From IMG/VR virus record IMGVR_UViG_3300042879_006196, positions 124,001 to 188,000 of that record: a stretch of DNA of 64,000 nucleotides, one strand, 5' to 3'. Positions 8,067 through 51,872 of this stretch are shown here, one piece after another. How positions within the stretch are numbered: position 1 is the stretch's first letter; the number at the start of each line of letters is the position of its first letter. The position numbers and the translations under genes are program-made. The notes under the pieces were generated by a model. It saw only the letters and a program-made list of their open reading frames with translations, searched no databases and was not told where the DNA came from.

Positions 8067-9455
8067 ATGGCAGATAGAGTTTTTCCAAATAATATAAATG
8101 TTGACATGGGTTCTAAAATTACATTCTCAGGAATAGATTGGGGCACTGTTGAAGCAAACATCAAAAATAATAAGTTCGCTAGTGACCAATCAGAAGAAGT
8201 GCAAGCACTTTTAAGAATGGCTAACGAGCAAATGGCTCCAGTTGAACAGACCACTAAAGCGCTTACACCAGAAAAAATAGCACAATACAGACCTAAATTG
8301 ATCGAAGCTTTAGATAAAATTGCAGAAGAAGCTCAAATGGATGATCAAAATAAAGAAAATTTTAAAGCTGAAGTTTTATCTGAATTTGAAAGAAATCCAG
8401 GTGATGAAGAATCAATCAAAAACTCGATTGCTGAATTACAAAAAGCAAATATTATTTCTGCTAACTCAGGAAATAAAATGCAAAGAACAGCTCTTATGAA
8501 AATTTATCTCCTTATGGCTAAAGCAATGGAAGATTTAATGTCTCAAGGCATGTCTGAAGAGGAAGCAAAAGCTGAAATTGAAAAAGATTTTTCAATTCTT
8601 GAAAACTATAGAGACATGTTACCAGAAGACAACTCTAGTCCAAAAGAATTAAAAGATTATTATCCAGATGATTACACTCCTGAATATCCTGAGTCAAAAA
8701 ATGATTTTGCCAACTCAAGAAAAACCAAAAGAGAAGCTATGAAAAAAATTGCATTTACACATCCTAGTCAAATAAGCGCTGAGGCAATTGAAAAAGCTAA
8801 AGCTGCTGGTGACACTAAACTCGTCAACACAATCTTAGCAGCAAGAAAAGCAAACAGACAAAGAATCGCTGCTGCGATAGAAGAAAAAAATGAAGTTTCT
8901 GAAAGAATTGCGCAAAGAAACAATATTTTGAAATTGGCTCAAATGGATGATCTTTTTGATGAGAAAGAAATGATGGATAACACAATGGATGACTCAATGG
9001 ATAACACAATGAACGATCCAATGAATGATCCAATGAAGAAGAAGCCTAGAGTGCCTGGAGATTTATCATTAGACGCAATGCTTCCAGCAGATGAATCTGA
9101 AGCCCCAACTTTAGCTTTCACTTCTCCAACAAAATTCACAAAGGCACAACGAGCATCATTTGCTAAAATTGCAAAATCTTTGGGTATGCCTGACGAATAT
9201 GTTAAAGCAATGTGCACACCAGTGCTTTCCCCTGAGACAGAAAGATTAAACAGAGAAATCAATGAAATTAAAATGTCAAGAGTCTCTGAAAAAACAAAAA
9301 ATTCTTTGATTAAAACTTTAATTAAAGAAGCAAAGCTTTCAACAGAATCAAAAAATGAATTTATCAGATATTGGAATGAAACATTAGGTTATCAAGACAA
9401 ACAGTTTTATAAAGATGTTGCCGCTGATTATGTTGACGGAAAAAAGGTGAACTAA
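8067..9455 (+). CDS. Hypothetical, putative head protein
   Basis: 462-aa ORF; KFAS, KKIA, KLAQ and KEAK motifs; short Met-rich repeat. Confidence 0.6.
   Translation: MADRVFPNNINVDMGSKITFSGIDWGTVEANIKNNKFASDQSEEVQALLRMANEQMAPVEQTTKALTPEKIAQYRPKLIEALDKIAEEAQMDDQNKENFKAEVLSEFERNPGDEESIKNSIAELQKANIISANSGNKMQRTALMKIYLLMAKAMEDLMSQGMSEEEAKAEIEKDFSILENYRDMLPEDNSSPKELKDYYPDDYTPEYPESKNDFANSRKTKREAMKKIAFTHPSQISAEAIEKAKAAGDTKLVNTILAARKANRQRIAAAIEEKNEVSERIAQRNNILKLAQMDDLFDEKEMMDNTMDDSMDNTMNDPMNDPMKKKPRVPGDLSLDAMLPADESEAPTLAFTSPTKFTKAQRASFAKIAKSLGMPDEYVKAMCTPVLSPETERLNREINEIKMSRVSEKTKNSLIKTLIKEAKLSTESKNEFIRYWNETLGYQDKQFYKDVAADYVDGKKVN
8970..9035 (+). repeat. Degenerate 12-bp coding tandem repeat (MDNT-MDDS-MDNT-MNDP-MNDP-M)
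   Basis: atggataacaca/atggatgactca/atggataacaca/atgaacgatcca/atgaatgatcca. Confidence 0.75.
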
Positions 9456-45735: not shown

Positions 45736-46158
45736 ATGAATAAAAACATATCTACAAAAATTGTATCAGCTCTTTCGATCTTTGCTCTGGCAACCACTTC
45801 TTTTGCACAATCTACTTTCGGGAGACCTCACATTAATTCAGTGACTGGTAGAGTTAATGTTTTACCAAATGTAAGAGTTATTGATTTTGGAAGACTCATT
45901 TATCAAGGAAGAATGGACGTAAATTCTACTATTGATAGAATCAGATTGGGTAGAAAGCTAAATCATAAAAATGACGGATCATTTTTTTCAAATTTTCAAC
46001 GAAGACTTCCAGCAAGCCCAGACACACAATACTACAGAGAGTTTGTTCATCAAATGAATGGTTTTCCTTTTCCTGGACCACAAAGAGTGGTAATTGGCAA
46101 AAGAGGAGAAGTGTGGTATACAGGTGATCATTACAGTTCTTTTTTCAAAGTAAGATAA
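45736..46158 (+). CDS. Secreted guanyl-specific ribonuclease (barnase/RNase Sa, N1/T1 family)
   Basis: Signal peptide ending SFA/QS; DGSFFSNFQRRLP...YYREF...GPQRVVIG...VWYTGDHYSSF with catalytic E, R and H positions. Confidence 0.88.
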   Translation: MNKNISTKIVSALSIFALATTSFAQSTFGRPHINSVTGRVNVLPNVRVIDFGRLIYQGRMDVNSTIDRIRLGRKLNHKNDGSFFSNFQRRLPASPDTQYYREFVHQMNGFPFPGPQRVVIGKRGEVWYTGDHYSSFFKVR

Positions 46159-46177: not shown

Positions 46178-47197
46178 ATGAGTAAGATTGAATCCGACAA
46201 AGAAAAAAAACAATCTATAAAACCTATTGCTAAAAAAACTGATTTTAATGGTGATAAAATAACACATTCTGAAACCGAAAAAACCAGAGGTGTTGTTGTA
46301 TTTTTATCATCTGACTTAAGTGGTGCACCAGAAGTAATAGATGTTCACGACGGTACAGTAGATTTGGATGCTACCAACTCTCTAAAGAATGACACCGAAT
46401 CAGAAAACTTGGTATTACAAAGCTTATATTTTGATTCAATTTCGCCTGAAATCAATTGTAAACAACAAAAAATGTATCTAAAAGGCTCAGGTTTAAATTC
46501 AAAATTACCTGAGATTAAATGCAAAACAACACTCAGGGAGCGAATAGAAGATAAAAAAAACTCAATGCTGTCTAGAACTATTTTTTTGATAAATTTGTTC
46601 TTTTTGAAGAAAAAGTACACAAATTTCTTTACAAATATTTATTCAGAAATAATACCAGAAGATGTTTTCCAAGCAAAGGTTTTGAATTTGACTAAGTTCA
46701 ATCGCAATAGATTGATGAAAAAGTATGGTATCAGTGAAGATGAGCTCAATTTTATTGCTTTTGCAAGATTCTCGTACCCATTTATAACTAGAGGTGAAAA
46801 AGAATGGAGCAAAATCGAAAAAAATGCTGATGCGTTCATTGCAAGAAAATGGATAACAGAAGACATTAAAGGTAATTTCAAAATAAATGTTAGCAAAGTT
46901 TATACATTCAGGGAAAAAATTATTTTTCCTAATCAATTTAAAGACATTGTTATCAAAAAAGCTTTTAATTGGAAAATCTTAAATAAGATTCTGAGAAAAG
47001 TTGAAAGAAGTGCAAAAACTCAAGTGCACGTTTATACTATTTCTCAAATTAGCAAACTTCCTTTTACCCAATTTGGAAATAGTAATATTGCCACTCATCC
47101 TCCTATTAGTAAAAATGATGAACAAATAAGTAGTTTGATCAAGAAAAAACCAATTGAAGCAATGAGTAGCATTAATAAAAAAAATTTTTTAAAATAA
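46178..47197 (+). CDS. Hypothetical basic protein
   Basis: 339-aa ORF preceded by TGTGTATAAT. Confidence 0.55.
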   Translation: MSKIESDKEKKQSIKPIAKKTDFNGDKITHSETEKTRGVVVFLSSDLSGAPEVIDVHDGTVDLDATNSLKNDTESENLVLQSLYFDSISPEINCKQQKMYLKGSGLNSKLPEIKCKTTLRERIEDKKNSMLSRTIFLINLFFLKKKYTNFFTNIYSEIIPEDVFQAKVLNLTKFNRNRLMKKYGISEDELNFIAFARFSYPFITRGEKEWSKIEKNADAFIARKWITEDIKGNFKINVSKVYTFREKIIFPNQFKDIVIKKAFNWKILNKILRKVERSAKTQVHVYTISQISKLPFTQFGNSNIATHPPISKNDEQISSLIKKKPIEAMSSINKKNFLK

Positions 47198-47264
47198 AAT
47201 AAAATAAGAAACTTTTTTAAAGGAAAAACCGTCTAAGATTGTGTAATATAAAAAAGGAACTAAA

Positions 47265-47318
47265 ATGACAAATTCGCTACTCCATTCATATCCAGCCTAC
47301 GCACCCTCATCGGGGTAG
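47265..47318 (+). CDS. Leader peptide of tRNA array 1 (MTNSLLHSYPAYAPSSG)
   Basis: RBS AAGGA; ATG at 47265 to TAG at 47316-47318; codons match the downstream tRNAs (Pro, Tyr, Leu, His, Ala). Confidence 0.8.
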   Translation: MTNSLLHSYPAYAPSSG

Positions 47319-47387
47319 TGGCTCGTTGCGTATTTGACAAGCTACAGAACCCCGAAGGACTCAAATCTTTCGGGGTTTTTTATTTTT
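47294..47387 (+). promoter_or_regulatory. Transcription attenuator 1 (protector/antiterminator/terminator)
   Basis: 1:2 pairs 47294-47306 with 47312-47323; 2:3 pairs TCGGGGT/GTGGCT (47310-47323) with AGCTAC/ACCCCGA (47340-47355); 3:4 is the terminator 47348-47377 plus U-tract. Confidence 0.8.
47348..47387 (+). terminator. Intrinsic terminator upstream of tRNA array 1
   Basis: AACCCCGAAGGA-CTCAAA-TCTTTCGGGGTT followed by a T-rich tract. Confidence 0.88.
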
Positions 47388-47410
47388 GAACATTGACAAT
47401 TTAATAAAAT

Positions 47411-47489
47411 CTATGCGTTGAGGAGTTTGGCTTACCTCGCGTCCCTTGGGAGGACGAGTACGCAGGTTCAAATCCTGCCGCATAGACCA
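47411..47489 (+). tRNA. tRNA-Pro(TGG)
   Basis: Acceptor CTATGCG/CGCATAG; anticodon arm CGTCC-CTTGGGA-GGACG; encoded CCA. Confidence 0.9.
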
Positions 47490-47493
47490 ATTT

Positions 47494-47578
47494 GGGGGCA
47501 TCGCATAGTGGCAATTGCTGGAGACTGTAAATCTCCCCTCGCGAGAGTTCGTAGGTTCGAGTCCTTCTGCCCCCACCA
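47494..47578 (+). tRNA. tRNA-Tyr(GTA)
   Basis: GGAGA-CTGTAAA-TCTCC; long variable arm; CCA. Confidence 0.93.
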
Positions 47579-47585
47579 AAATTTT

Positions 47586-47665
47586 GCCGAAGTGGTGGAA
47601 TGCATACACGCTAGTCTTAGAAACTAGTGCCTTAGGGCATGTGGGTTCAAATCCCACCTTCGGTA
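47586..47665 (+). tRNA. tRNA-Leu(TAG)
   Basis: CTAGT-CTTAGAA-ACTAG; variable arm; ends TCA rather than CCA. Confidence 0.88.
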
Positions 47666-47671
47666 TCAAAT

Positions 47672-47745
47672 AAGCAAGTAGCTCAATTGGTAGAGCCTTT
47701 TGGTTGTGACCCAGAAGCGTGTGAGTTCAAATCTCACCTTGCTGA
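47672..47745 (+). tRNA. tRNA-His(GTG), atypical or degenerate acceptor end
   Basis: TTTGG-TTGTGAC-CCAGA; canonical D and T arms; 1:72 mismatch, no G-1/C73, no CCA. Confidence 0.7.
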
Positions 47746-47754
47746 CTCAGTTTA

Positions 47755-47831
47755 GGGGCTGAAGCTTATTAGGGAAAGCGTCTGATTTGCAATCAGAAGT
47801 CTTGCGGGTTCGAAACCCGTCAGCTCCACCA
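47755..47831 (+). tRNA. tRNA-Ala(TGC)
   Basis: G3:U70 present; TCTGA-TTTGCAA-TCAGA; CCA. Confidence 0.92.
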
Positions 47832-47832
47832 A

Positions 47833-48150
47833 TTACAAATCATAAAATCTCTTTGGAGTGTAAATATATTTCATAGGCTGAACACCTACCTCGTCAGGTT
47901 GAGTTGTAGGTTCTTCAGCTAATTCGCCTAATACCGCTGGTGGCTCAGGAATAGGGGGATTAATTTGTGCTGGTTCGTTAACAACATTATTTTGTTTACG
48001 ATTATATTCTCTTGCCAATTCTTTACAAGTTTCGCAAGCTCTTTCATCAAATTGCCAGATTGTGTTTCCGCCAGGAAGTTGTTCAATGAAGCATCTACAC
48101 CCTTCATGCACAGGAGGTAAGATTTGTTGTTGTGAATATTTATACCACAC
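47833..48150 (-). CDS. Small protein with a PPxHxxCRC motif (minor-head-protein-like); start probably GTG at 48150
   Basis: (M)WYKYSQQQILPPVHEGCRC...CETC; AGG-N18-TGAA motif upstream; separates the two tRNA arrays. Confidence 0.55.
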   Translation of the reverse strand: MWYKYSQQQILPPVHEGCRCFIEQLPGGNTIWQFDERACETCKELAREYNRKQNNVVNEPAQINPPIPEPPAVLGELAEEPTTQPDEVGVQPMKYIYTPKRFYDL

Positions 48151-48239
48151 AATCTGATTTTCAAGAAAAAAAACAAAAAAACCTAATTTTATAGAACAAA
48201 AAGGAGATTGTGTCGTATAATCATAATAAGGAATTAACA

Positions 48240-48308
48240 ATGAAATTAAATTTGCAGGGCAGTATGGTGGGATGTTTTATTTGGTCAACCCAAGGGGGTA
48301 GTGGCTAG
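48240..48308 (+). CDS. Leader peptide of tRNA array 2 (MKLNLQGSMVGCFIWSTQGGSG)
   Basis: TATAAT at 48215-48220; RBS TAAGGA; ATG at 48240 to TAG at 48306-48308; codons match the downstream tRNAs. Confidence 0.82.
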   Translation: MKLNLQGSMVGCFIWSTQGGSG

Positions 48309-48373
48309 AAACCTGCTGTTAGCAAAAATTTCAACCAAAATCCCTGAAGGCAAAATCTTCAGGGATTTTTTTT
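48282..48373 (+). promoter_or_regulatory. Transcription attenuator 2
   Basis: 1:2 hairpin TGGTCA-ACCC-[AAGG]-GGGT-AG-TGGCTA (48282-48307); G-run/TGG/GAAA (48293-48311) can pair imperfectly with TTTC/CCA/TCCCT (48329-48345); terminator 48337-48373. Confidence 0.72.
48337..48373 (+). terminator. Intrinsic terminator upstream of tRNA array 2
   Basis: AAAATCCCTGAAGG-CAAAA-TCTTCAGGGATTTTTTTT. Confidence 0.9.
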
Positions 48374-48374
48374 A

Positions 48375-48388
48375 TGTTCTTTGACAAT
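48375..48388 (+). promoter_or_regulatory. boxA-like antitermination element (variant GAACATTGACAAT at 47388-47400)
   Basis: TGTTCTTTGACAAT resembles rrn boxA; same relative position before both arrays. Confidence 0.55.
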
Positions 48389-48398
48389 TAAATAGTGA

Positions 48399-48474
48399 GC
48401 GATATTGGTGTTAATGGTTAGCATCACTGCCTTCCAAGCAGAGGGTGCCAGTTCGAATCTGGCATATCGCTCCA
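48399..48474 (+). tRNA. tRNA-Gly(TCC)
   Basis: GCGATAT/ATATCGC; loop CTTCCAA; U73; CCA. Confidence 0.92.
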
Positions 48475-48482
48475 GATTATGT

Positions 48483-48558
48483 GGCTTTCAGGTGTAACTG
48501 GTGTGCACGAAGTGCTGAAAACGCTTAGGACATAGTTCAATTCTATGGGGAGCCACCA
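48483..48558 (+). tRNA. tRNA-Phe(GAA)
   Basis: AAGTG-CTGAAAA-CGCTT; CCA. Confidence 0.88.
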
Positions 48559-48567
48559 CAATTTTGA

Positions 48568-48654
48568 GGAAGGTAATGCTGAATGGTTTTGGCGAATGTT
48601 TGCTAAACATTTCGGGCTGAAAGGTCTCTGGTTCAATTCCAGTGCCTTCCTCCA
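48568..48654 (+). tRNA. tRNA-Ser(GCT)
   Basis: AATGT-TTGCTAA-ACATT; long variable arm; CCA. Confidence 0.88.
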
Positions 48655-48659
48655 TACAA

Positions 48660-48747
48660 GGGGAATTCGCATAGTGGTCTAGTGCGGCTGTCTTGAAAAC
48701 AGTAGGGCTGAAAGGTTCCGTGGGTTCGAATCCTACATTCCCCTCCA
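48660..48747 (+). tRNA. tRNA-Ser(TGA)
   Basis: GCTGT-CTTGAAA-ACAGT; long variable arm; CCA. Confidence 0.92.
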
Positions 48748-48755
48748 AGTTTTGT

Positions 48756-48829
48756 GTTGTCTCTAGCTCAGTTGGTAGAGCATTCCATCGCGAGGAAAGG
48801 CGAAGGTTCAATTCCTTCGGGCAACACCA
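48756..48829 (+). tRNA. Atypical tRNA-like gene with nominal anticodon CGC, identity uncertain
   Basis: Canonical D and T arms and CCA, but a 4-bp anticodon stem TTCC-ATCGCGA-GGAA, a bulged acceptor stem and no G3:U70. Confidence 0.6.
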
Positions 48830-48835
48830 TTTTAT

Positions 48836-48922
48836 TGAGGAATAGTGTAATTGGTAACACGCTAGGTTTTGGCCCTAGAGACAGAAATGCTCGTCCACGT
48901 TCGAATCGTGGTTCCTCAGCCA
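48836..48922 (+). tRNA. tRNA-Gln(TTG) with a long variable arm
   Basis: TGAGGAA/TTCCTCA; G73; CTAGG-TTTTGGC-CCTAG; 16-nt variable region; CCA. Confidence 0.85.
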
Positions 48923-48925
48923 AGC

Positions 48926-49000
48926 ATCCGAGTAGCTCAATGGTAGAGCCCAATCTTGATAAGGTTGAGGTTTTTGGTTCAAGCCCAAACTCGGATACCA
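48926..49000 (+). tRNA. tRNA-Ile(GAT)
   Basis: CAATC-TTGATAA-GGTTG; CCA. Confidence 0.88.
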
Positions 49001-49001
49001 C

Positions 49002-49076
49002 ATCCGCGTAGCTCAACGGTAGAGCAAAATCCTTACAAGATTGAGGTTTTTGGTTCGAATCCAAACGTGGATACCA
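49002..49076 (+). tRNA. tRNA-Val(TAC)
   Basis: AATC-CTTACAA-GATT; CCA. Confidence 0.88.
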
Positions 49077-49081
49077 ATTTC

Positions 49082-49155
49082 GGCAAATTAGCTCAATGGC
49101 AGAGCGGAGGTATCATAAGCCTTTGATAAAAGTTCGATTCTTTTATTTGCCCCCA
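49082..49155 (+). tRNA. tRNA with CAT anticodon (elongator Met or Ile2)
   Basis: GAGGT-ATCATAA-GCCTT; paired 1:72 and no initiator triple G-C; CCA. Confidence 0.8.
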
Positions 49156-49158
49156 TAA

Positions 49159-49232
49159 GCACGATTAGCTAAATGGTAAAGCAAGGGTCTGCAAAACCTT
49201 TATCGCTGGTTCGATTCCAGCATTGTGCTCCA
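49159..49232 (+). tRNA. tRNA-Cys(GCA)
   Basis: AGGGT-CTGCAAA-ACCTT; U73; CCA. Confidence 0.92.
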
Positions 49233-49235
49233 TAC

Positions 49236-49310
49236 ACCGCTGAGAGTAGGTTGTTTCTAAAGAGTCTCCAAAACTTTTTTACCTGGGTTCAAATCCCAGC
49301 GGCGGTGCCA
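49236..49310 (+). tRNA. tRNA-Trp(CCA), atypical D arm
   Basis: AGAGT-CTCCAAA-ACTTT; G73; CCA. Confidence 0.82.
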
Positions 49311-49313
49311 ATC

Positions 49314-49622
49314 TCACGACACAATCTTAATAATATGCGGTTCTGTTTCTGAGATATTGAATATACCATCACCCAATTGATATTTTTTACCTAAATCATC
49401 AATGAAATCCTGAAATTGCGTTTCAGCATTTTCAATCACTTCTTGGTTTTGTGCAAATTCTGCCTGTAGGGATTGCATTTGCTTTTCAGTTTTTCTCATC
49501 ATATCAAATAAATCTGATCTTTTTCCTTTCAGATTAAGAATACCAGCTCTCATTTGGGTATAGTTGTTGAATTCTTCTTTGGAAAGTGCTTTTTCAGATT
49601 GTGTGTCGCTTTTGAACTTCAT
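49314..49622 (-). CDS. Hypothetical coiled-coil protein
   Basis: 102-aa ORF downstream of the endolysin. Confidence 0.55.
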   Translation of the reverse strand: MKFKSDTQSEKALSKEEFNNYTQMRAGILNLKGKRSDLFDMMRKTEKQMQSLQAEFAQNQEVIENAETQFQDFIDDLGKKYQLGDGIFNISETEPHIIKIVS

Positions 49623-49640
49623 AATATTATTTTACAAGAT

Positions 49641-50489
49641 TTATCTTGTTCTTATTAAAACAAAAGTGGCTCCAGTTTTATCACAAACATCTCTCAAAAA
49701 TATCCAAGCGCTGCCATTTTCATCTATCTCGGCTACAGGCACAGAATAACCTTTCAAGCCATTCATCCACACAATGTTTTTGCCCATTTTTGTCAAAGCA
49801 TAATTTTTGGGTTGTAATTTATTAATAAATTCTCTAGCAGGAACAATAGTTCTACTATTTACCACTCTTGTTTTACCATAAATGAAAACATTATCTCCCA
49901 ATGTTATTTCAAAAACAGGATTAGTCCAAGGCGCGGCACCTTCCCCACTAAAAATTAAATATTGTTTATTTACTGCATCTACAAATTTTGTTTTGTCTAC
50001 AAGTTTACCAGGGCATGTTTTATTTGTCAAAGGGTCATCTCTATGGAATTTAAGTGTAGGTGGTTGCACCTTTAGATAATCGCAAAGAAACCCACACAAT
50101 TCTTGAGTGATTTCAAAAATTTCTTTTGCTCTATGTGAAGTGAAATCTGTAACAGTGTCGTAGTCACCTAGCATTTCTATACCCCAAGCATTAGCATTAT
50201 AGCTTTTGGCATGTACGCCAGGTTTGTTTAATGCTTGAAAAAGAATAATTCCTTTATCATCTACAAAAAAATGTGGTGCACCGTTCCAATTCATAACATG
50301 CTCATAATAATATTTCAAATTGATGAGATGTTGATCTGTGAAGCCATTTGGTCTTTGTGAAAGATTAGGTGAGGCTGTGTGATGTACTACAACAAATTGC
50401 GGTTTAAATGAAGTGAAATTCAAAGTTGCTAAATAAGTTTTTAGTTCTGCGATCGTTACTCTTTTGCCAACATAAGGAATAGTGCCCAT
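49641..50489 (-). CDS. N-acetylmuramoyl-L-alanine amidase (Amidase_2/PGRP-like endolysin)
   Basis: VVVHHTA...HFFVD...GVHAKSYN...GIEMLG...FHRD...KTCPG; C-terminal domain resembling copper amine oxidase N-terminal repeats. Confidence 0.88.
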   Translation of the reverse strand: MGTIPYVGKRVTIAELKTYLATLNFTSFKPQFVVVHHTASPNLSQRPNGFTDQHLINLKYYYEHVMNWNGAPHFFVDDKGIILFQALNKPGVHAKSYNANAWGIEMLGDYDTVTDFTSHRAKEIFEITQELCGFLCDYLKVQPPTLKFHRDDPLTNKTCPGKLVDKTKFVDAVNKQYLIFSGEGAAPWTNPVFEITLGDNVFIYGKTRVVNSRTIVPAREFINKLQPKNYALTKMGKNIVWMNGLKGYSVPVAEIDENGSAWIFLRDVCDKTGATFVLIRTR

Positions 50490-50544
50490 AACTTTATTCT
50501 TCTAAATAAAAATTAATTTTCACTTTTTCTTTTATAACTTTAAT

Positions 50545-51090
50545 ATGACTTTGAATTGCAATATTCCACATTTTGAATGTTTTGTTAAAAAAGAATTTCT
50601 TACCAACTTTACACAATCTGATGAGTTGATAAAAGCCAAAGCTTTTGCAGTGTCGAGCACAAGAGGTCAAGTGTTACAGTTTCATGTTTTGACAGAGCAT
50701 GGAGCAATGTTTTCTAAACTTCCAGTGCATGCTTTAGTTCTTAAAAAAGATTATGAAAAAATGGAATTAAATCAGCTTGTCACTTATGATACTTTTAGTT
50801 TTCATTTGTCAAACATTACTTATGATTATTTAAAATATTTGACATGCACATACTTTGCTGGTGATAAACGCGAAAAATATGGGGCTACATATTTTACAAC
50901 AGTTGATTTTTATGATTCCGAGTATGCAGATCACCCTGGTGTCACTAAATGTTGTCATATTTTGTTTTTAGATAATGGCAATATTGCGGCAGCACCAAAC
51001 AATAGAATCCTATGGAACGACACAGGATTAAAGTCAGATGTAACGAAAATTGATTATAAGCCTTTAAATAAAATCTTTACAGTGGAATGA
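50545..51090 (+). CDS. Conserved hypothetical phage protein
   Basis: LNCNIPHFECFV...FHVLTEHGAMFSKLPVHAL...LDNGNIAAAPNNRILW. Confidence 0.6.
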   Translation: MTLNCNIPHFECFVKKEFLTNFTQSDELIKAKAFAVSSTRGQVLQFHVLTEHGAMFSKLPVHALVLKKDYEKMELNQLVTYDTFSFHLSNITYDYLKYLTCTYFAGDKREKYGATYFTTVDFYDSEYADHPGVTKCCHILFLDNGNIAAAPNNRILWNDTGLKSDVTKIDYKPLNKIFTVE

Positions 51091-51872
51091 AAATATTTTT
51101 TGATCATATTCTTTTTCAGCAAACTAATTACAATTTTAATCATACACTTGTATCTGCAATTTTTGAAGAAAATGAATATAATTATGCATTAGAAAATGGA
51201 TGGTTTCCAGATAATTTTTGGATAAATTCATCTACAAGTCATTCAATAAGATGTGAAAAATTGGGCGAATTTGTTTGGTCTCCAATAAGATCTTCTAGAA
51301 TTAAAGTGGAGGATTTTGTACTTGACAAAAAAGATAGAAGATTACTTAAAAATAATATTGATGTAGAAAAGCAAATTGTTTCGCAAATAGATACTGTAGA
51401 AGTGTTTGAAGTTTATAAAAAATATATTTGCGCAAAAGGATTCGATGATTTTAAGGATTCATTAGAAGATTTCAAACATAGTTTTTGCCGAGAAGATTTT
51501 CATTTTTTACTTTACAAACAAAACACAATCTTAATAGGCTTTTGTATTGTGCAACCATTTGGAAATAATCTAGTGTCTTATCAATTTTGTTGGGATTATG
51601 AAAATCCAAAATTAAGTTTGGGAAAATTTTCACAAATTCAAGAAATAGAATATGCTAAATCACTCAACATGAATTATGTTTACATAGGATGCATTGCTGA
51701 AAAAGAAGGAATGTATAAAAGTAATTTTTCTGGATTTGAATATTTTAATGGAAGAGAATGGAGAAAGAAAGATAACTTAATCGAAAAATGGCTTTTGAAT
51801 GATTCAGATTGTGTGAGTATTGACAGATTGTGTGAGTTAGAAAAGGAATACATCAAAGACTACCAGGTTTAA
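51087..51872 (+). CDS. Aminoacyl-tRNA-protein transferase-like (ATE1/Bpt family GNAT fold)
   Basis: ALENGWF...RSSRI...YQFCWDYENPKLSLGKFSQIQEIEYAK...YVYIG...MYKSNF. Confidence 0.75.
   Translation: MKIFFDHILFQQTNYNFNHTLVSAIFEENEYNYALENGWFPDNFWINSSTSHSIRCEKLGEFVWSPIRSSRIKVEDFVLDKKDRRLLKNNIDVEKQIVSQIDTVEVFEVYKKYICAKGFDDFKDSLEDFKHSFCREDFHFLLYKQNTILIGFCIVQPFGNNLVSYQFCWDYENPKLSLGKFSQIQEIEYAKSLNMNYVYIGCIAEKEGMYKSNFSGFEYFNGREWRKKDNLIEKWLLNDSDCVSIDRLCELEKEYIKDYQV

Follow-up and report, generated by a model that had tools for sequence, protein, structure and literature searches.

The identical 12 letters GGGGTAGTGGCT found in two leaders of a giant lake phage appear to be the RNA switch strand of two sister leader-peptide attenuators, each preceding a tRNA gene array and seemingly allowing transcription of that array only when the tRNAs it encodes run short. 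In each leader the 12-mer is predicted to pair either with the end of its own short open reading frame (ORF) or with the base of the 5' arm of an intrinsic terminator, and each leader is enriched in codons read by the tRNAs of the array behind it. The probability assigned to this explanation is about 0.7. The window analysed is a 64,000-nt stretch of DNA, bases 124001-188000 of a 347 kb, 33.6% G+C virus record (IMG/VR record IMGVR_UViG_3300042879_006196) from lake-water metagenomes; coordinates are those of the window unless otherwise stated.

Two leaders with a common layout

The first-pass annotation had reported the 12-mer in both leaders, in different reading frames at or next to the stop codons, and this observation is confirmed. 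With up to one mismatch there are no other matches in the window, where 0.05 are expected and 0 of 100 shuffles gave two or more. The whole genome adds only a one-mismatch site inside a coding gene, and nothing on the reverse strand. The frames are as annotated: G-GGG-TAG in leader 1, where the TAG stop at 47316-47318 lies inside the 12-mer, and GG-GGT-AGT-GGC-T(AG) in leader 2, where an extra G upstream puts that TAG out of frame and the ORF ends at the next TAG (48306-48308), which overlaps the last T of the 12-mer. The shared terminator scaffold was also found. One point requires correction, since the leaders had been described as otherwise dissimilar: they also share a promoter-like AGATTGTGT..TA(T)AAT motif, an AAGGAA Shine-Dalgarno sequence and a TTGACAATTWAAT box just before the first tRNA. 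Each copy of the 12-mer thus lies in a unit consisting of promoter-like motif, Shine-Dalgarno, short ORF, hairpin, 14-bp intrinsic terminator with T tract, box and tRNA array, the array starting 5-11 nt after the box (Table 1).

Table 1. Positions of the elements of the two leader units and of neighbouring features in the window
Feature	Position	Strand	Sequence or observation
Promoter-like motif, leader 1	47236..47249	+	AGATTGTGT + TAATAT; inferred
Shine-Dalgarno, leader 1	47254..47259	+	AAGGAA; conserved as AGGAA in relatives
Leader ORF 1	47265..47318	+	MTNSLLHSYPAYAPSSG, 17 codons plus TAG
Region 1, leader 1	47294..47307	+	AGCC-U-AC-GC-ACCCU; pairs with the 12-mer in the predicted closed form
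12-mer copy 1 (region 2)	47312..47323	+	GGGGTAGTGGCT
Region 3, leader 1	47340..47354	+	AGCUAC-AGA-ACCCCG; predicted antiterminator partner, overlaps the terminator base
Intrinsic terminator 1	47346..47385	+	14-bp stem, T tract; called by the terminator scan at 47346-47379
Terminator scaffold, leader 1	47354-47369		GAAGG..AAATCTT
Box, leader 1	47393..47405	+	TTGACAATTTAAT
tRNA array 1	47411..47831	+	Pro(TGG), Tyr(GTA), Leu(TAG), His(GTG), Ala(TGC)
Promoter-like motif, leader 2	48205..48221	+	AGATTGTGTCG + TATAAT; inferred
Shine-Dalgarno, leader 2	48228..48233	+	AAGGAA
Leader ORF 2	48240..48308	+	MKLNLQGSMVGCFIWSTQGGSG, 22 codons plus TAG
Region 1, leader 2	48280..48291	+	UUUGGUCAACCC; pairs with the 12-mer in the predicted closed form
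12-mer copy 2 (region 2)	48295..48306	+	GGGGTAGTGGCT
Region 3, leader 2	48335..48345	+	CCA-AA-AUCCCU; predicted antiterminator partner, overlaps the terminator base
Intrinsic terminator 2	48337..48377	+	14-bp stem, T tract; called by the terminator scan at 48337-48369
Terminator scaffold, leader 2	48346-48359		GAAGG..AAATCTT
Box, leader 2	48381..48393	+	TTGACAATTAAAT
tRNA array 2	48399..49310	+	Gly(TCC), Phe(GAA), Ser(GCT), Ser(TGA), Ala(CGC), Gln(TTG), Ile(GAT), Val(TAC), Met(CAT), Cys(GCA), Trp(CCA)
tRNA-Ser(GCT) of array 2	about 48573-48654		found only at a relaxed ARAGORN threshold, and as a sub-threshold tRNA-Sec-like Rfam hit
tRNA-Gln(TTG) of array 2	48836-48922		87 nt, long extra arm unusual for a Gln tRNA; conserved in clade A relatives
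ORF with Ribonuclease homologues	45736-46158	+	homologues hit Pfam PF00545 (barnase/T1 type)
ORF with ATE_C homologues	51087-51872	+	homologues hit ATE_C (aminoacyl-tRNA protein transferase)

Each ORF has its Shine-Dalgarno 5-6 nt upstream of the start codon, an arrangement conserved in all relatives; translation itself is not shown. Only tRNA genes lie downstream of the terminators, and the two ORFs listed last in Table 1 are tRNA-related or RNA-related functions beside the arrays. The promoters are inferred from the shared motif, as a scan for sigma-70 two-hexamer promoters did not call them, but the same AGATTGTGT..TATAAT motif stands directly before the Asp-Asn-Thr tRNA array elsewhere in the genome. 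The 8-mer CACAATCT/AGATTGTG occurs 166 + 223 times in the 347 kb genome, against about 5.5 expected per strand, in both orientations and partly inside ORFs (in the window e.g. at 47236, 48205 and 46158 as AGATTGTG, and at 48148 and 49320 as CACAATCT). It belongs to a repeated module TTTTTTCCAGGTTTAACACAATCTGATTATAATAGATATG before many genes at 34-66 kb and to a 14-nt tandem array near 68.3-68.5 kb, lies directly upstream of the -10 of both leaders, and is likely a phage promoter or regulator site. The other tRNA loci of this phage (Asp-Asn-Thr, Lys, Arg, Met-Glu) have a -10 element directly in front and no leader. The TTGACAATTWAAT box, conserved in both leaders and all clades, is not followed by a -10 at promoter spacing; no function is assigned to it, but it may be a pre-tRNA 5'-leader or processing signal. 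A similar box, TTGAAAATTAAAT, precedes a tRNA-Leu-like gene outside the window (genome 13660-13965) that appears to be split by about 230 nt, possibly by a group I intron.

Predicted alternative pairings of the 12-mer

The free leaders fold into a long imperfect hairpin followed by the terminator, and whole leaders fold better than shuffles (z -3.3 and -4.0). In this closed form the 12-mer is the 3' arm of a helix whose 5' arm is the end of the ORF (region 1), in leader 2 UUUGGUCA-ACCC. When the ORF was masked, as by a ribosome, and the 3' arm of the terminator was left untranscribed, the 12-mer paired instead with a look-alike of region 1 that overlaps the base of the 5' arm of the terminator (region 3). 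In leader 1, eleven of the twelve bases are paired in both forms and only A6 is free. Leader 2 shows the same logic in a different register: A6 and G7 are free in both forms, G1 is free in the closed form, and the 3' GGCU part pairs only in the closed form. The mutually exclusive 1:2, 2:3 and 3:4 helices are therefore predicted in both leaders, robustly in leader 1 and more weakly in leader 2. The antiterminator is predicted in every homologue, at -18.5 to -20.6 kcal/mol for leader 1 and -10 to -15 kcal/mol for leader 2. Pairs are kept in 84-100% of cells, against 31-62% when the partners are slid; for region 3 of leader 1 the figures are 95.6% against 31-51%. A duplex-versus-shuffle test is only moderate, with a joint P of 0.0005 for leader 1 and 0.019 for leader 2.

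A scan of ribosome footprints gives the expected switch. With the A site at codons 1-12 of leader 1 the 12-mer is free and holds the terminator arm, whereas from codon 14 to the stop it lies under the ribosome; in leader 2 it is covered from codon 17. A ribosome that reaches the last 4-6 codons thus covers the 12-mer, and the stop codon is placed so that a terminating ribosome masks it. For leader 2 the prediction is less clean: with the ribosome at Ile14 or Trp15 the antiterminator is only about 50% populated, because the model lets the 5' part of the ORF pair around the ribosome. Transcript data were sought in sequencing runs containing the region, but for 48196-49400 the runs labelled RNA are probably DNA and gave only short contigs of related strains, without transcript ends, so that no conclusion on expression was drawn and readthrough under scarcity of charged tRNA was not measured. 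The host was not identified, and coupling of transcription and translation is assumed.

Leader codons and the tRNAs of each array

Nine of the 16 codons after the start of leader 1 can be read by array 1 tRNAs, against a genome fraction of 0.18 (P=8e-4), and 16 of 21 in leader 2 by array 2 tRNAs, against 0.40 (P=7e-4). At the amino-acid level, all five amino acids of array 1 and 9 of the 10 of array 2 appear in the right leader (joint P about 1e-3 and 6e-4). Only 3 and 4 of 1749 small ORFs in the genome do as well, the two leaders not having been removed from that set. Cross-controls are not significant, neither leader being enriched for the other array. The Leu codons of leader 1 are the rare CTA and CTC, which make up 7% and 4% of Leu codons in this genome and suit tRNA-Leu(TAG), while the two non-sensing Leu codons of leader 2 are the common TTA/TTG. 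The match is not perfect: leader 1 has four Ser codons that array 2 serves, and leader 2 has no Ala codon and one Thr codon.

In relatives (loci designated by L numbers), amino-acid replacements in the sensing part mostly stay within the set of the array, for example S8 to P or L and Y12 to L. Strict co-variation between leader content and array content is only partial and is not used as an argument. Clade B lacks both the Ile tRNA and the Ile codon, and adds Leu(GAG) together with an extra CTC, but some relatives, such as L088, carry Val(TAC) without a Val codon in the leader. In L083, L088 and L089 a gene for an HNH endonuclease (in L089 at 8276-9052, a 258-aa ORF with an HNH motif) sits where relatives have tRNA-Leu, tRNA-His and tRNA-Ala of array 1; only Pro and Tyr remain, yet leader 1 is unchanged. 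This shows that the leader/array match can lag behind array change.

Conservation and paralogy

Absence of the motif from homologous leaders had been named in advance as an outcome that would overturn its proposed role. To avoid circularity, relatives were fetched through the neighbouring 339-aa protein (41-98% identity) and the DNA beside it was read. Every contig that reaches far enough has the same two arrays and both leaders, and the motif is present in every one. A search of viral contigs with the same protein found nothing, and a motif-independent DNA pattern (terminator plus box) gave 58 loci in viral contigs, of which only L004, of clade B, is real. The 12-mer is invariant in all 8 distinct leader 1 sequences and lies in the longest invariant run of that alignment, TCGGGGTAGTGGCT. 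In leader 2, where TGGTCAACCC is the longest invariant block, it reads GGGGTAGTGGCT, GGGGTAATGGCT or AGGGTAATGGCT. It changes there only at position 1 (G/A), unpaired in the closed form, and position 7 (G/A), unpaired in both forms; position 7 is paired and invariant in leader 1. Three natural changes in the partner strands all keep pairing through G-U: C>T in region 1 of L078 leader 2, C>T in region 1 of L091 leader 1, and A>G in region 3 of clade B leader 1.

The terminators show compensatory changes, with two compensatory pairs in terminator 2. In L076 (3300-3322) and L077 the inner stem and loop of terminator 1 are the exact reverse complement of the version in other clade B phages, a small natural inversion that keeps the hairpin. 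By contrast, true covariation in the 12-mer helices is almost absent because they hardly vary within each leader type, and the shuffle controls are flat for leader 1. The structural argument therefore rests on the pairing of different partners with the same strand in the two paralogues, and on the retention of pairing. The covariance model suggested in the first-pass annotation was not built, as the 1:2 helices of the two leaders sit in different registers and cannot share one consensus structure on a MAFFT alignment; nhmmer and the pattern scans already answered the question of copy number.

The suggestion to look for copies before further tRNA or translation genes was followed as well: none were found elsewhere in the genome, nor in relatives outside these two leaders. 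A pattern scan of metagenomes found 14 more loci, all from the same phage group and always before these two arrays; having been found through the motif, they do not count as independent evidence of conservation. The one hit in bacterial genomes, in a Chryseolinea MAG, lies in ordinary sequence with no tRNA nearby and no T tract after the matched stem, and is taken as chance.

Profiles built from either leader find the 3' half of the other (nhmmer E 0.002-0.006) and nothing else in the genome. The clade B leader 2 even starts ATGAGAAATTCGC, like the clade A leader 1 (ATGACAAATTCGC). Together with the shared non-coding modules, this indicates that the cassette was duplicated, that the ORF and the two partner strands were rewritten, and that the strand that must fit both partners was kept, which also explains why the peptide frame over the 12-mer is irrelevant. 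Other variations accompany the arrays. In clade B, tRNA-Gly(TCC) carries a 17-nt hairpin insertion in the anticodon loop and the tRNA after Ala(CGC) carries one of about 24 nt (L004 5276-5367 and 4055-4152, minus strand; same in L070 and L076), whereas L074 has the Gly gene without the insertion; the insertions are too short for group I introns, and no identity is assigned to them. A conserved element of about 95 nt lies between the TTGACAATTAAAT box and tRNA-Pro in L062 (8195-8289) and clade B (L004 7413-7506, minus strand); it is absent from the window and is called neither by ARAGORN nor by Rfam.

A proposed model for attenuation of the tRNA arrays

In the favoured explanation, the 12-mer is region 2 of two paralogous ribosome-dependent transcription attenuators. 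Once transcribed, it would first pair with region 1. When region 1 is held in a ribosome stalled at an upstream codon, the 12-mer would be free to pair with region 3, the (A)CCCC/(A)UCCC base of the 5' arm of the terminator, blocking the terminator so that RNA polymerase reads into the tRNA genes. When translation runs smoothly, the ribosome would reach the last codons and the stop, cover the 12-mer and let region 3 pair with region 4, whereupon transcription stops. Each array would be induced by shortage of its own tRNAs and shut off once supply is restored, a feedback loop. In this view, the 12-mer stays identical in both copies because it must satisfy two partners at once and is the hardest segment to change. 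The evidence is entirely computational: the analysis itself establishes the sequences, the predicted alternative pairings, the conservation, the codon/tRNA match and the paralogy, whereas translation of the ORFs, the promoters, actual termination and readthrough, and the feedback are inferred. The first-pass interpretation, conservation at the RNA level in a reusable attenuator cassette whose sensing codons were reprogrammed for each array, is supported.

Several other readings were weighed and are considered unlikely. The alternative of the first-pass annotation, that the 12-mer is mainly a binding site for a trans-acting factor (a phage antitermination or processing protein, an RNase or an RNA) that would control the leaders in place of ribosome position, could draw on its identity in paralogues whose partners differ in sequence and register, on A6, unpaired in both forms yet invariant in all 20 distinct leaders, and on the GGCU part of leader 2. 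However, the two alternative helices explain eleven of 12 bases in leader 1 and 9-10 of 12 in leader 2, the only variable positions are unpaired or weakly paired ones, no further copies exist in the genome, no protein-attenuator family is hit, and the codon/tRNA match is left unexplained. A factor-binding site is thus not needed and has no positive support, although it is not excluded for A6. About equally improbable is that the leaders are not sensors but a small ORF or structured 5' leader followed by a leaky or insulating terminator, or a processing and stability element for the pre-tRNA, the 12-mer being just the 3' arm of a conserved hairpin. The lack of expression data, the near absence of helix covariation, the unchanged leader 1 where three of its tRNAs have been lost and the leaderless tRNA loci of the same phage favour this view; the enrichment of each leader for the codons of its own array, the rare Leu codons, the replacements within the set of the array, the position of the stop codon and the conserved antiterminator overlapping the terminator base speak against it.

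Two further possibilities are very unlikely. The identity could be a mere remnant of recent duplication or gene conversion without selective meaning, as the leaders are paralogues, but both copies are kept in clades whose neighbouring protein is only 41% identical, while ORFs and spacers have diverged, and a 12-nt conversion tract maintained in every lineage is implausible. Terminated leader transcripts (about 120-140 nt) could also act in trans as small RNAs, as rnTrpL does, with the 12-mer as a shared seed. Such transcripts would be abundant and end in a stable hairpin plus U tail, a common seed would explain identity beyond the pairing needs, and attenuator-derived sRNAs are reported (PMC6614838). 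Yet the phage genome holds no complement of the 12-mer even with one mismatch; host targets were not searched.

It is tempting, though doubtful at present, to propose a first case of tRNA genes put under leader-peptide attenuation. The phage would carry a duplicable cassette of fixed switch strand, terminator and pre-tRNA box, with the ORF rewritten to list the tRNAs of the array behind it, each array acting as a self-adjusting supply that switches on only when those particular tRNAs become limiting. Causes could include codon-usage mismatch with the host, loss of host tRNAs during infection, or cleavage by host anticodon nucleases, in which case the device would also be a counter-defence sensor. 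Attenuation by leader peptides is a textbook mechanism, but for enzymes that make amino acids or charge tRNAs; here the output would be the tRNAs themselves, in a virus, and the sensor a peptide that lists up to ten different amino acids. If real, this shows how a phage can meter its own tRNA supply to the host it happens to be in, gives a natural example, useful for design, of a modular riboregulator whose input was re-coded after duplication while the switch strand was kept, and provides a sequence signature for finding conditionally expressed tRNA arrays in other viruses. The system lends itself directly to testing in a defined translation system.

Comparison with known systems

The tRNA gene clusters of large phages (T4, T5 and jumbo phages) are likewise arrays of tightly packed genes that supplement the pool of the host, and parts of arrays 1 and 2 match tRNA genes of many phages. 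Full-text literature searches found no description of a leader-peptide attenuator in front of such arrays, nor of leader-peptide attenuation of phage or bacterial tRNA genes. An attenuator-like leader of E. coli tRNA-Phe genes was considered as a possible precedent, but the pheV upstream region in K-12 shows no Phe-rich leader ORF, and it is not cited as one.

T-box riboswitches also couple tRNA status to a terminator/antiterminator choice upstream of translation-related genes, but a T-box senses uncharged tRNA directly by RNA-tRNA pairing and has no leader ORF. No match to the T-box model (RF00230) was found at E up to 1 in 46500-51500. A T-box-like reading of the UGGC inside the 12-mer is rejected, as these bases are paired and not in a bulge.

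In the multi-amino-acid leaders (ilvGMEDA, Ile/Leu/Val; thr, Thr/Ile) and in the His and Phe leaders (Rfam RF00514 and RF01859), the leader peptide is composed of the amino acids whose supply is monitored. Rfam gives weak full-length hits to His_leader (26.9 bits for leader 2 of the window, 30.3 bits for leader 1 of L004) and Phe_leader (21.1 bits), far below the gathering thresholds of 49 and 55 bits. Here 5 and 9-10 different amino acids are listed, mostly once or twice each, and they match the downstream tRNA set rather than a pathway.

The E. coli trp operon attenuator (trpL) has a short translated leader, a 1:2 hairpin, a 2:3 antiterminator, a 3:4 intrinsic terminator, a stop codon placed so that a terminating ribosome occludes region 2, and regulatory codons in and before region 1, and the two phage leaders follow this structural plan as far as sequence and folding predictions go. 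There is no sequence or Rfam family membership in common. The genes behind the phage leaders are tRNA genes and not biosynthetic enzymes, and several different amino acids would be sensed by single codons rather than by a run of one codon.
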